From the NCBI RefSeq assembly GCF_000006765.1, contig NC_002516.2: a stretch of 64,000 nucleotides of DNA; one strand, 5' to 3'. A program made the translations under genes and the position numbers. Of this stretch, positions 57,686 through 62,219 are shown piece after piece. Every line of letters begins with the position of its first letter. The stretch's first letter is position 1. Under the pieces are notes generated by a model. The model was not told the DNA's origin and did not search any database. It saw only the letters and a program-made list of their open reading frames with translations. The stretch is from Pseudomonas aeruginosa PAO1 (GTDB lineage Bacteria > Pseudomonadota > Gammaproteobacteria > Pseudomonadales > Pseudomonadaceae).

Positions 57686-58372
57686 CTACAGGCAGTGGGC
57701 GACCAGGGGCGCGACCAGCAGGTTGAACAGCCCGGTGAGAACCATCAGCAGACCGGCCGCCGAACCTTCCTCGCCGCCGAACTCGTAGGCCCGACTGGTG
57801 CCGGCGCCGTGCGCGCCGACGCCGAACAGCGCGCCGCGGGCCAGCGGCGTGCGCAAGCGCAGGACGCGCAGCAGGGTGCCGCCGATCACCGCGCCGAACA
57901 CCCCGGTGATCATCACGAAGGCGGCGGTCAGTTCCGGCACGCCACCCAGGTCGTGGGACATCTCCATGGCGAACGGCGTGGTGATCGAGCGCGGCAGCAA
58001 CGACAGCGTGACCTGGCCGTCCAGCGCCAGGGCCTGGGCCAGCGCCCAGGAGCTGCCGATGGCCACCGCGGTGCCGGCGAACATCCCGGCCAGCAGCGCC
58101 GGCCAGTGGCGCATCAGCAGCTCGCGCTGCTGCCAGATCGGGATGGCGAAGGCCACCGTCGCCGGACCGAGCAGCGCCACCAGCCAATTGGTGTCGCGAG
58201 CGTAGTCGGCGTAGCGGGTATGGGTGGGAATCGCCAGGGCATAGAGCAGCACCGGGACGAACACGATGGGCGACAGCCAGTACCACTTCACCCGGCGGTA
58301 CAGCTGGCGGCTCAGCAGGTAGCCGCCGACGGTCGCCGCCAACCAGAACAGGGCTTGCTTATCGAGACTCAT
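57686..58372 (-). CDS. LrgB/CidB-family membrane protein
   Basis: 228 aa; LLGPATVAFAIP, PRSITTP, GAHGAGT. Confidence 0.88.
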   Translation of the reverse strand: MSLDKQALFWLAATVGGYLLSRQLYRRVKWYWLSPIVFVPVLLYALAIPTHTRYADYARDTNWLVALLGPATVAFAIPIWQQRELLMRHWPALLAGMFAGTAVAIGSSWALAQALALDGQVTLSLLPRSITTPFAMEMSHDLGGVPELTAAFVMITGVFGAVIGGTLLRVLRLRTPLARGALFGVGAHGAGTSRAYEFGGEEGSAAGLLMVLTGLFNLLVAPLVAHCL

Positions 58373-58748
58373 GGCGCGCCCTCCAGCGGCACATCCACTC
58401 CACCGACACCGCGGTGACCAGCATCACCAGCAGGGTGCTGAGCATGATCACCAGGAGGATGCGCCAGCCCTCGCTGCGTAGCAGCGCGCCGTAGTCGAGC
58501 AGGCTCATCAGCGCCGGGATGAAGAACAGCAACATCTCCGCCAGCAACAGGCCGGCGCCGGCCTGCAGCCAGGCCGGACGCAGCAGGCCGCTGGCGAACA
58601 GCAGCAACAGTGCCGCCAGGCCGACCACCCCGCCCGGCAGCGGCAGGCCGATGGCCTTCGCCAGCCAGCCGCCGGCCCACCAGAAGGCGATGAGTACCGC
58701 CAGTTCGGCGGCAAGGCGGGACAGACGGCGGACGAGCGGGGGCAACAT
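58359..58748 (-). CDS. CidA/LrgA-family holin-like protein
   Basis: 129 aa, TTG start; LPLPGGVVGL, EMLLFFIP. Confidence 0.88.
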   Translation of the reverse strand: MLPPLVRRLSRLAAELAVLIAFWWAGGWLAKAIGLPLPGGVVGLAALLLLFASGLLRPAWLQAGAGLLLAEMLLFFIPALMSLLDYGALLRSEGWRILLVIMLSTLLVMLVTAVSVEWMCRWRARHESR

Positions 58749-58843: not shown

Positions 58844-59737
58844 ATGGAATTCCGTCAACTCCGCAGCTTCGTCGAAGTGGTCCGCCAGGGCAGCTTCACC
58901 CAGGCGGCTCAGGTCCGCCACGCCAGCCAGTCGACCATCAGCAAGCAGGTCGCCCAACTGGAGCAGAGCCTTGGCGTGCAGGTATTGGAACGCAACGGGC
59001 CGCACGTGCGCCTGACCGACGCCGGCGCCGTGGTGTTTCGCCGCGCCGAGGAGATGCTGCGGCTGCGCCGCGACCTGCTCAGCGAATTGGACGACCTCAG
59101 CCAGCTCAACCGCGGCGAACTGCGCCTGGGCCTGCCGTTGCTCGGTGCCGACGCGCTGTTCGCCCAACGCTTCGCCGAATACCGGCGGCGCTATCCGAAC
59201 ATCGCCGTGCACCTGGTGGAGGGCGGCAGCAAGACCATGGAGCAGGCGGTGCTGGCCGGCGAGCTGGAATTGGCCGGCAGCCTCACCCCGGCGGACGACG
59301 GCTTCGACTACCAGCCGTTCTGCAACGAACCGCTGGACGTGCTGCTGCCGGCCGGGCATCCCAAGGCCGCTGCCGCCAGCGTCGCCCTCGGCGAACTGGC
59401 GGACAGCCCGTTCCTGCTCTACCAGCAGAGCTTCACCCTCAACGACCGCCTGCTGCGCGCCTGCCTGGAGGCCGGCTTCAGCCCGCGCGAAGGCGGCCGC
59501 AGCGGCCAGGCCGACTTCCTCGGCGCGCTGGTGGCGGCCAACCAGGGAGTGGTGCTGCTACCACGGGTGATCGCTCGCGAGATCGAACGCCCGGGAGTGG
59601 TGCGGGTCCTGCTCAGGGAGCCGGACCTGCGCTGGGACATCGCCTTCATCTGGCGCCGTGGCGGCTACCTGTCGCGGGCGGCGCAGGCCTGGCTGGAGCT
59701 GCTGCGCGAGCAGCCGCTGGAGGAAAGCCCGGCGTAG
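58844..59737 (+). CDS. LysR-family regulator (CidR-like)
   Basis: 297 aa LysR HTH, divergent from cidA/lrgB pair. Confidence 0.9.
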   Translation: MEFRQLRSFVEVVRQGSFTQAAQVRHASQSTISKQVAQLEQSLGVQVLERNGPHVRLTDAGAVVFRRAEEMLRLRRDLLSELDDLSQLNRGELRLGLPLLGADALFAQRFAEYRRRYPNIAVHLVEGGSKTMEQAVLAGELELAGSLTPADDGFDYQPFCNEPLDVLLPAGHPKAAAASVALGELADSPFLLYQQSFTLNDRLLRACLEAGFSPREGGRSGQADFLGALVAANQGVVLLPRVIAREIERPGVVRVLLREPDLRWDIAFIWRRGGYLSRAAQAWLELLREQPLEESPA

Positions 59738-59998
59738 GACGAATAACCGCCAGCTCGGCAGAGGCTACGGCGGATAACGCCTGGGGGCGTTATTCGCCCT
59801 ACCGCTTGCTCCCTCCCCGTGTAGGGCGAATAACCGCTACGCGGTTATCCGCCACCTCGGCAGGCGTTTCGGCGGATAACGCCTGGGGCGTTATTCGCCC
59901 TACCGCTTGCTCCCTCCCCGTGTAGGGCGAATAACCGCTACGCGGTTATCCGCCACCTCGGCAGGCGTTTCGGCGGATAACGCCTGGGGCGTTATTCG
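59734..59998. repeat. REP-doublet array, left part
   Basis: Degenerate REP at 59734, units at 59769 (102 bp) and 59871 (101 bp), and the first 27 bp of unit 3 from 59972. Each unit holds two inverted GTAG-type REPs. Confidence 0.95.
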
Positions 59999-60001
59999 TA
60001 T

Positions 60002-60014
60002 ATGGACTCCTCCC
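60002..60014. repeat. IS subterminal inverted repeat (right end, 3 bp from end)
   Basis: ATGGACTCCTCCC, exact reverse complement of 61351-61363. Confidence 0.95.
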
Positions 60015-60049
60015 GGTTTGCCAGTGTTTGTCTTGATTTCAAACCTGTG

Positions 60050-60210
60050 TACGACTGCATCCGTATATCCGGCTTCATGGAGTGGTGTTGCAACTCCCGA
60101 GCCCTGATGAAATGCGCGCCTGCATACCTGATCGCCCTAACGGCTTTGCTTCACTGCAGCAGGGAGCCCACGTATAAACCAGGTTTCATGCAGGCCGGTT
60201 CGACCGGTTC
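60050..60210 (-). ncRNA. Putative bridge/seek RNA of the IS (target- and donor-binding loops)
   Basis: Manual folding gives two stem/internal-loop/hairpin modules whose loops match the REP target and the circle junction; transcript ends unknown. Confidence 0.8.
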
Positions 60211-60273
60211 GTCATCATTGTCATTCACTGAGCAATCGTGGTGGATGTTTCAACTACGGTGTGGCAGGAACGC

Positions 60274-61290
60274 TCAACCGGGCCGGTAGCATGTCTCCCG
60301 GCTGAGTAAAGCCCAAAGGATCCGGGCATTCTTGTTGGCCAGGGCAACGGCGACGACATTGGCAGGACGCCGTTGCAGCAGACCTTGCAGCCAGCGGCTG
60401 CGGGCATCGGTCTTGTTGGCGCAACAGCGCACGACTGCACGGGCGCCATGGATGAGCAAGGTCCGCAAGTAGGTATCGCCGCGCTTGCTGATGTTGCCCA
60501 AGCGCTGCTGCCCGCCCGTGGAGTGCTGCCGTGGCACCAGGCCCAGCCAGGCCGCAAACTGGCGGCCCGTGCGGAATTGCCGTGCATCACCGGCGGATGC
60601 CGCCACCGCGCTGGCGCTGATCGGGCCGATGCCTTCCACCGCCAGCAGGCGCTGGATGCGGGCATCGCCACGTACGTGAGCCTGAATCTGTCGCTCCAGT
60701 CGAGCGATGCGCGCCTCCAGCGTCTGCAATTCATCTTTCAATTCACGCAACAGCTCGCCCATCGGGGCCGGCAAGGGCGCCGGCTCGGTAGCCATGACCG
60801 TTTCGAGCAAGGCCATCGTCGCCGCTCGCCCACGTCGAGTCGCGATCAGCCCGAACTCACCCAGCAAGCCACGCACCTCATTGCACAACGCCGTGCGGGC
60901 CCGCACTAGACGACTGCGCACCCGATGCATCGACTGCACGGCCTGCTGCTCTGCGCTCTTCACCGGGACATAGCGCATGCTCGGACGACTGGCGGCTTCG
61001 CAGATCGCCTCGGCGTCGTGTGCATCGTGCTTGTCACCCTTGACGTAGGGTTTTACGAACTGCGGTGCGATCAGGCGTACCGTGTGGCCCAGCTCCCGCA
61101 ACTCGCGCGCCCAGTAGTGCGCACTGCCGCAGGCCTCCATCGCCACCAGGCACGGCGGCAGTTGGCGAAAGAAATCCCGCACCTGTGCCCGCTTGAGTTG
61201 GCGACGACATACCACATGCTCGTGACGATCAACGCCGTGCACCTGGAATACTTGTTTTGCCAGATCCAGACCAATGCGACTAAGGTTCAT
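60274..61290 (-). CDS. IS110-family DEDD transposase/recombinase
   Basis: ATG 61290 after GGGGGAG (338 aa); RuvC-like GLDLAK, MEACG, KHDAHDAEAI; HhH VEGIGPISA; GLVPRQHSTGG with conserved Ser; intact frame. Confidence 0.96.
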   Translation of the reverse strand: MNLSRIGLDLAKQVFQVHGVDRHEHVVCRRQLKRAQVRDFFRQLPPCLVAMEACGSAHYWARELRELGHTVRLIAPQFVKPYVKGDKHDAHDAEAICEAASRPSMRYVPVKSAEQQAVQSMHRVRSRLVRARTALCNEVRGLLGEFGLIATRRGRAATMALLETVMATEPAPLPAPMGELLRELKDELQTLEARIARLERQIQAHVRGDARIQRLLAVEGIGPISASAVAASAGDARQFRTGRQFAAWLGLVPRQHSTGGQQRLGNISKRGDTYLRTLLIHGARAVVRCCANKTDARSRWLQGLLQRRPANVVAVALANKNARILWALLSRETCYRPG

Positions 61291-61350: not shown

Positions 61351-61363
61351 GGGAGGAGTCCAT
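61351..61363. repeat. IS subterminal inverted repeat (left end, 7 bp from end)
   Basis: GGGAGGAGTCCAT. Confidence 0.95.
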
Positions 61364-61370
61364 TTCATTG

Positions 61371-61639
61371 CCCTACCGCTTGCTCCCTCCCCGCGCAGGG
61401 CGAATAACCGCCACGCGGTTATCCGCCACCTCGGCAGGCGTTTCGGCGGATAACGCCTGGGGCGTTATTCGCCCTACCGCTTGTCCTCTCCCCGTGTAGG
61501 GCGAATAACCGCTACGCGGTTATCCGCCACCTCGGCAGGCGTTTCGGCGGATAACGCCTGGGGCGTTATTCGCCCTACCGCTTGTCCCCTCCCCGTGTAG
61601 GGCGAATAACCGCCACGCGGTTATCCGCCGCCTCGGCGG
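61371..61639. repeat. REP-doublet array, right part
   Basis: Remaining 74 bp of unit 3, unit 4 at 61445 (101 bp), unit 5 from 61546 (degenerate end). Confidence 0.95.
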
Positions 61640-61652
61640 GGTACGCCCGGGA

Positions 61653-62105
61653 TCAGCCCTTGAGGGCGGCGGCGAACTCGGCCAGCCAAGGCTCGGCGTC
61701 GGTCTCGGGGGTAACGGTTTCGCTGGCATCCAGGCGCAGCATCGGCAGCACTTCACGCACGCCCAGTTCGCCGAACAGTTCGCGAACCTGCTCGCCGCCA
61801 CCGCAGAACGTGTCGCCGTAGCTCGAATCGCCCAGGCCGATGACCCCACCCGGCAGGCCGTGCCAGGCCGGCAGTTGGTCGCGGATCGCGTAGTACAGCG
61901 GTTGCAGGTTGTCCGGCAGTTCGCCCATGCCGGTGGTCGAGGTCACCACCAGGAATGCCTCGGGGGCGAAGGCCTTGAGTTCGTCGAGGCTGGCGCGGGG
62001 CAGATGGGAGGCCTCGAGGCCGGCCGCGGACAGCAATTTCTGGGCGTGCCGGGCGACTTCTTCGGCGGTGCCGTAGACCGAGCCGGAGAGAATGGCGACT
62101 TTCAT
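61653..62105 (-). CDS. Flavodoxin (MioC/YqcA-like)
   Basis: ATG 62105 (150 aa); GSVYGTAE, STTGMGELP, GLGDSSY..FCGG. Confidence 0.9.
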   Translation of the reverse strand: MKVAILSGSVYGTAEEVARHAQKLLSAAGLEASHLPRASLDELKAFAPEAFLVVTSTTGMGELPDNLQPLYYAIRDQLPAWHGLPGGVIGLGDSSYGDTFCGGGEQVRELFGELGVREVLPMLRLDASETVTPETDAEPWLAEFAAALKG

Positions 62106-62219
62106 GAACACTCCGTAAGCCAACAGGGGTAAGCCGGGCATTATGCCGCATGCGTTCGCCGAGCGGGACGCACCGAATCAATGCAGACAGGCTGCAAAAG
62201 CACCATTTCGGTGCGCACC

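Follow-up and report, generated by a model that had tools for sequence, protein, structure and literature searches.

Covariation with element ends of a probable donor-binding loop in the guide RNA of ISPa11

The Insertion Sequence and Its Chromosomal Setting

The window, i.e., the whole stretch of 64,000 nucleotides of Pseudomonas aeruginosa PAO1 analysed here (contig NC_002516.2), carries a 1372-bp insertion sequence at positions 61370 to 59999, on the minus strand, like all the features of the element described below. Comparison by protein and by target identifies it as ISPa11, from the IS1111 group. Its transposase gene (60274–61290) encodes a protein of 338 aa with DEDD/RuvC-like and Tnp domains (Pfam PF01548 and PF02371), which matches the NCBIfam model NF033542, "IS110 family RNA-guided transposase", with 365.7 bits for a cut-off of 140. 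All the residues (338/338) are identical to those of the ISPa11 protein given in supplementary file 6 of PMC11187229, and the insertion site is the published ISPa11 target, GTAGGGCGaATAAC, intact copies of which adjoin the element in the window. Since the transposase is identical to that of ISPa11 and the target, GTAGGGCGAATAAC, is as published, the element is assigned to ISPa11 and to the IS1111 group. The copy found in the window is in fact the type copy of a known kind of element.

The borders were placed by means of four intact 20-nt copies of the target and of the inverted repeats. The left end consists of a 7-nt terminal extension, CAATGAA (61364–61370), followed by a 13-bp subterminal inverted repeat, ATGGACTCCTCCC (61351–61363), and the right end of the 13-bp repeat GGGAGGAGTCCAT (60002–60014) followed by a 3-nt terminal extension, ATA (59999–60001), the next base being C59998. 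Both extensions thus stand outside the subterminal repeats. The first base of the left extension, C61370, is the shared junction ("core") base, an assignment based on its match with the RNA in 34/34 unique relatives (see below). From the stop codon of the transposase gene to the right end, 275 nt are non-coding. These 13-bp repeats, the extensions CAATGAA and ATA and the long non-coding region 3′ of the transposase gene are features of the IS1111 group. On the minus strand, the order is therefore the left half of the target ending with GCGGTAGGG, C61370, AATGAA, ATGGACTCCTCCC, the gene, the non-coding region, GGGAGGAGTCCAT, ATA and C GAATAACGCC. The two halves of the interrupted REP target are AGCGGTAGGG (61371–61380) and C GAATAAC (59991–59998). 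Once rejoined, with the C counted once, the flanks give the 20-mer GCGGTAGGGCGAATAACGCC. This uninterrupted 20-mer is found four times alongside the element, which indicates that ISPa11 inserted without target duplication, and such site-specific insertion without duplication is a feature of the family.

The unit interrupted by ISPa11 belongs to a tandem array in which each REP-containing unit is 101 bp long. This array extends on both sides of the element (59740–59998 and 61371–61640) and four perfect 20-nt target sites beside it, at 59786, 59887, 61461 and 61562, are unoccupied. Array and element lie between a gene encoding a LysR-type regulator (58844–59737, plus strand) and a flavodoxin gene (61653–62141, minus strand). 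An LrgA/LrgB-like gene pair (57686–58748, minus strand) adjoins the divergent regulator gene just upstream of the array and, together with it, forms an ordinary chromosomal context. The REP unit adjoining ISPa11 also shows a sub-threshold Rfam match to the Pseudomonas small RNA P33 (RF02404; 59903–59994, plus strand; 30.1 bits for a gathering score of 45, E = 0.0004), probably a REP-derived similarity. A megablast search with the whole element found no ISPa11 copy in the plasmid collection.

Two Adjoining Modules in the Non-Coding Region

For comparison, 80 loci encoding 48–80% identical transposases were gathered from one-genome-per-species contigs and their subterminal repeats were located. 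Structures were counted on an alignment of 39 sequences from these relatives. Covariation of the donor loop was assessed on the 49 loci for which both ends were found, which give 34 unique combinations (transposase identity 51–80%). The locus L026 was left out, as an insertion in its non-coding region misaligns it.

The minimum-energy fold of the non-coding region yields two modules (60194–60119 and 60117–60057) that are 1 nt apart, downstream of the transposase gene. The alignment of the 260 nt upstream of the right end indicates that both are kept in relatives whose transposases are 51–80% identical. The stability of neither fold exceeds that of shuffled sequences (z about −0.9). Such values are normal for RNAs with large internal loops. 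Searches of Rfam with the whole window at gathering score, and with 60015–60273 at E ≤ 10, returned no family; Rfam 15 appears to hold no model for the guide RNA.

The first module (60119–60194) is a target-binding loop. Its 3′ guide, UAGGGC (60139–60134), is identical to the left side of the target plus the core base and its 5′ guide, UUAUACG (60177–60171), pairs with top-strand CGAATAA with one A·A mismatch, so that the two guides match opposite strands of the target. Instead of the CGAATAA present at 59998–59992, a perfect target for UUAUACG would be CGTATAA; the published target prints the same position in lower case. All seven pairs of the outer stem (7/7) show compensatory changes in relatives, and the two guides track the flanks of each relative at 281/294 and 321/392 positions, versus 165 and 225 in permutations. 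Directly 5′ of this loop, a small stem-loop can be read from the sequence (60195–60207, CCGGU CGA ACCGG) within a block, GGTCGAACC, conserved in the alignment. The long RNA may have this stem-loop as its 5′ hairpin.

The second module (60057–60117) is the one that the initial annotation had proposed to be a donor-binding loop. Only two of its closing pairs, G60117-C60057 and C60116-G60058, are kept in 39/39 aligned relatives, together with a partly kept G·U pair. Since these two pairs are invariant, covariation speaks neither for nor against the closing stem. The GCAU/AUGC closing stem previously drawn for this module has to be replaced, as its register is peculiar to ISPa11 whereas the register located two bases upstream is invariant in the 39 relatives. 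This conserved register leaves the entire 8-nt 5′ guide unpaired. The outer stem of this module was rightly described as weaker than that of the target loop.

Inside the loop, a hairpin (60071–60103) combines a GGCY/RGCC base stem with a helix whose sequence varies, and includes a 1-nt bulge and, on the 3′ side, an unpaired stretch. The stems indicated for it earlier, GGCU (60103–60100) with AGCC (60074–60071) and GGAGU (60097–60093) with ACUCC (60083–60079), are those found here. Two pairs of the base stem show compensatory changes and nearly all the 39 relatives have a bulged hairpin with differing helix sequences (mean z = −2.0), the exceptions being L055, reduced to the base stem, and L027, in which the upper helix forms poorly. 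An AUC/GAU pairing between the guide regions is also proposed, both by RNAalifold and by the single-sequence fold. Because L051 and L069 change column 144 and break this pairing while keeping the match to their own DNA, it was not taken as a functional pair.

Matches Between the Second Module and the Joined Ends

On the minus strand, the left end (C-AATGAA-ATGGACTCCTCCC) and the right end (GGGAGGAGTCCAT-ATA) give, once joined, CCAT-ATA-C-AATGAA-ATGG, exactly the junction that had been noted at the outset. The two matches proposed on that occasion also hold, coordinates included. The 3′ donor guide, AUAUAC (60063–60068), reproduces in order the final 2 nt of the right inverted repeat, ATA and the core C; having the same sequence as this end, it would pair with the bottom strand. 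On the other side of the loop, the 5′ donor guide, initially reported as UUCAU (60111–60107) and in its extended form as CAUUUCAU (60107–60114), is complementary to ATGAAATG, i.e., to positions 2–6 of the left extension plus 3 nt of the inverted repeat. It lies opposite the segment AATGAA (61369–61364) of the left end and does not pair at the first left-end base and the junction base, where its C and A face A and C. The two guides therefore match opposite strands of the joined ends of ISPa11. The same pattern is seen in both loops of the RNA: to the right of the junction or target, the top strand is complementary to the 5′ segment; to the left, shared base included, it has the sequence of the 3′ segment. 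The claim that the donor loop is carried by the same RNA as the target loop is thus supported by the contiguity of the modules, by this common strand logic and by guides that track the ends and the flanks, and it agrees with the bridge RNA model published, and predicted for ISPa11 itself, in PMC11208160.

How unusual these matches are in a single sequence was evaluated on mononucleotide shuffles of the non-coding region compared with a 20-nt junction window. An identity of at least 6 nt is obtained in 52% of the shuffles, a complementary match of at least 8 nt in 2% and both matches jointly in 1%. Furthermore, the non-coding region holds other 6–7 nt identities to the junction. For example, ACAATGA (60221–60215), found within conserved sequence on the 5′ side of the target loop, reproduces the junction over the shared base (A|C|AATGA); as this match is not kept in relatives, it is probably due to chance. 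Given these rates, the donor match in ISPa11 alone is only moderately unusual, and the 6-nt identity in one sequence is by itself not significant. It is the comparison with relatives that makes the match convincing, the covariation between guides and ends being decisive.

Covariation of the Probable Donor Loop with Element Ends

In relatives, the left end follows a common plan: a base that is C, T or A, then (A/G/C)A(T/C)G, two variable bases and the repeat. The right end consists of the repeat followed by A(T/C/G)(A/T). The 3′ donor segment agrees with the right end of its own element at 170/170 positions in the 34 unique relatives. The permutation mean is 155.5 and the maximum 164, so that none of 20,000 permutations attains the observed value. 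The right-end variants mirrored by this segment include ACACA-U, AUAGA-U, AUACA-U and AUACU-A. The G that follows the core in the 3′ guide would extend the match to the integrated right junction (AUAUACG). It is retained even where the flank starts with A or C and is therefore probably structural.

At the junction position, the RNA agrees with the base before the left end in 34/34 relatives and with the base after the right end in only 30/34, in keeping with the IS1111 convention, which assigns the junction base to the 7-nt left extension. In the relatives L012, L017, L025 and L047, the bases on the left and on the right of the element differ (C versus T, or T versus G) and the donor guide has the left one, which suggests that these elements inserted into targets whose junction base was not that of the donor.

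The 5′ segment forms Watson-Crick pairs with left-end position 5 in 34/34 relatives and with position 6 in 24/34 (29 if G·U is included). For positions 5–6 together, 58/68 pairs are Watson-Crick; permutations give 26.9 on average and 42 at most. Thirteen distinct DNA/RNA dinucleotide combinations were found, including AA-UU, GA-UC, GG-CC, AC-GU, AG-CU, GT-AC and AT-AU. Positions 2–4 pair with the 5′ segment and scarcely vary; position 1 and the junction base pair in just 16/34 and 19/34 relatives. The same guide rule fits three distant plasmid-borne elements, among them IS4321 (43% transposase identity); across the three, the ends CTA, AGA and TTATAG correspond to AUCUAU, AUAGAU and UUAUAG in the RNA. 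The permutation test takes no account of relatedness; with many distinct states on both the DNA and the RNA sides, many independent paired changes are needed to explain the data. Covariation this strong shows that selection acts on the donor loop to keep it matched to the element ends.

Function of the Module and Alternative Explanations

These data lead us to consider, with a probability of about 85%, that 60117–60057 (minus strand) is the donor-binding loop of the ISPa11 guide RNA (bridge RNA or long seekRNA). The RNA would be transcribed downstream of the transposase gene and contain two adjoining internal-loop modules. The first one (60194–60119) would read the REP target TAGGG-C-GAATAA and the second one the joined ends CCAT-ATA-C-AATGAA-ATGG: in this second loop, AUAUAC would pair with the right end and the junction base (bottom strand) and CAUUUCAU with the left end (top strand). 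The transposase subunits that bind the two loops would juxtapose target and circular donor junction and exchange strands at the shared C. The sequence matches, the conserved architecture and the covariation of the guides with the element's own ends are observed here. We infer that the ISPa11 donor loop works as described and that both loops act on one molecule.

Among the alternatives, the one that survives best, while being improbable, is that the module is only a protein-binding scaffold or a processing element, the transposase recognizing the ends through the 13-bp inverted repeats and the matches having no pairing role. The long inverted repeats of IS1111 elements could indeed serve protein recognition, a short RNA containing only the target module is enough for ISEc11, and GGAUAUA and CAU, which make up much of the loop, hardly vary, as expected for a protein-contact motif. 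However, a scaffold has no need to change along with the element ends, whereas the RNA mirrors every change in the right extension and most changes at left-end positions 5–6, in the correct strand sense.

It is still less probable that the complementarity serves RNA-RNA pairing, for example with the leader of the transposase mRNA, and regulates translation or processing instead of reading DNA. CAUUUCAU is complementary to AUGAAAUG, which any transcript entering from the left end would contain, and regulatory small RNAs have been described for the REP-targeting ISPpu9 (PMC12288879). Nevertheless, the 3′ segment has the sense of the right end and cannot pair with a sense transcript; moreover, the opposite-strand pattern is that of the target loop, whose reading of DNA is experimentally established in the family.

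As for chance matches or a functionless DNA-level remnant (such as an internal copy of an end), the least probable explanation, it can draw on the ease with which shuffles produce the 6-nt identity and on the other such matches of the non-coding region, but it appears already refuted, within the reach of the comparative data, by the rarity of the joint occurrence, the placement of the matches on the two sides of a conserved internal loop, a level of covariation never attained in the permutations and the conservation of the module down to 43% transposase identity.

Comparison with Published Systems

The donor-loop finding is correct and already known, as the bridge or seek RNAs of IS110/IS1111 elements, ISPa11 included, were published in 2024. 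Durrant et al. 2024 predicted and drew donor guides for ISPa11 (PMC11208160, legend of Extended Data Fig. 10c); their predictions assign a bridge RNA, located in the right end, to 93% of IS1111 elements. In the work of Siddiquee et al. 2024 (PMC11187229), long and short RNAs from the non-coding region co-purified with TnpPa11. Sizes of 172 and 96 nt are tabulated for the ISPa11 RNAs in PMC13604230, and published work analysed the abundant 96-nt RNA for target matches only. The published ISPa11 RNA and that of the window share the transposase, the REP target, the position 3′ of the transposase gene and the target mismatch printed in lower case; no difference was detected, the donor guides being compared through the figure legend. 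The present work is thus minor as a discovery, ISPa11 having already been studied and its donor guides predicted. What it adds is independent support, drawn from comparison, for the view that the donor-binding loop of the IS1111 group is real and selected; earlier experiments in this group addressed target recognition only.

The mechanism by which each loop pairs with both strands of one DNA partner, with strand exchange at a shared core, has been demonstrated for IS621 (PMC11208160, PMC11208158), and donor reprogramming for IS621 only (PMC11208160). The ISPa11 RNA resembles that of IS621 by its two internal loops, the target loop being 5′ of the donor loop, by the presence in each loop of two guides, directed respectively to the left half-site (bottom strand) and to the right half-site (top strand), and by the core that the two guides share. 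In contrast with IS621, it lies 3′ of the transposase gene, in the right end, and the guide order within the loops is reversed (the 5′ guide reads the top strand), as indicated in the published account of IS1111 elements. Furthermore, the overlap is a single base (C or T) in the ISPa11 type instead of CT, the donor site is flanked by 13-bp inverted repeats and the 5′ donor guide falls short of the core. Lastly, no handshake-guide pattern is recognizable in ISPa11, and the alignment of relatives gives no consistent pattern of this type in either loop.

IS4321 and IS5075-type elements of enterobacterial plasmids have the same donor-loop architecture as ISPa11 (in L082, AGA-T corresponds to AUAGAU and AATGAG to CUCAU) but, for IS4321, a transposase that is only 43% identical and another target. 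This target is the terminal repeats of Tn21-family transposons.

Within the IS1111 group, ISEc11 is, by its description in PMC11187229, similar to ISPa11 in its 7-nt and 3-nt extensions, its downstream non-coding region and its long and short RNAs. In a plasmid assay, an 82-nt ISEc11 RNA limited to the target module was sufficient for transposition and outperformed the long RNA (PMC11187229), whose role, according to the authors, has yet to be established. According to the initial annotation, circularization and insertion proceeding normally without the second module would speak against it; by this criterion, the ISEc11 result is partial counter-evidence as to the necessity of the donor loop. 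For an IS110 element, a 2025 preprint (10.1101/2025.10.25.684509) attributes target-loop-only events of this kind to direct transfer without passage through the circle. The donor loop of IS1111-type elements may be dispensable for direct transfer driven by the target loop alone and needed for the route through the circular junction.

Donor Positions Varying in Nature

The comparison also reveals which donor positions vary in nature. In the Pseudomonas clade, the 5′ guide is consistently unpaired at the first left-end base and at the core, and this could be, by analogy with the handshake guides of IS621, the counterpart of a "do not pair with your own DNA" rule. A more general proposal, according to which the donor loop is needed conditionally, its natural programmability is narrow and the non-pairing of the 5′ guide is the counterpart of the handshake rule, is, taken as a whole, rather doubtful.

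The narrow range of variation may have to do with transcription from the junction. Circularization would create a candidate sigma-70-type promoter, TGGCAA, 17 nt, TA|C|AAT (60023–59999 joined to 61370–61367, minus strand), whose putative −35 box, TGGCAA, is read from the sequence at 60018–60023. Junction promoters have been published for ISEc11 (PMC11187229, section 7). Such a promoter may explain both the near-invariance of the terminal ATA and AAT and the fact that only two or three donor positions vary in nature: the bases read by the donor loop, ATA-Y-AAT, may mostly be those of the junction −10 box as well (TACAAT, or TATAAT with T), which would leave two or three positions free. Relatives with T at the junction would have TATAAT, a perfect −10 box, and they show a conserved TTGCAA at −35.
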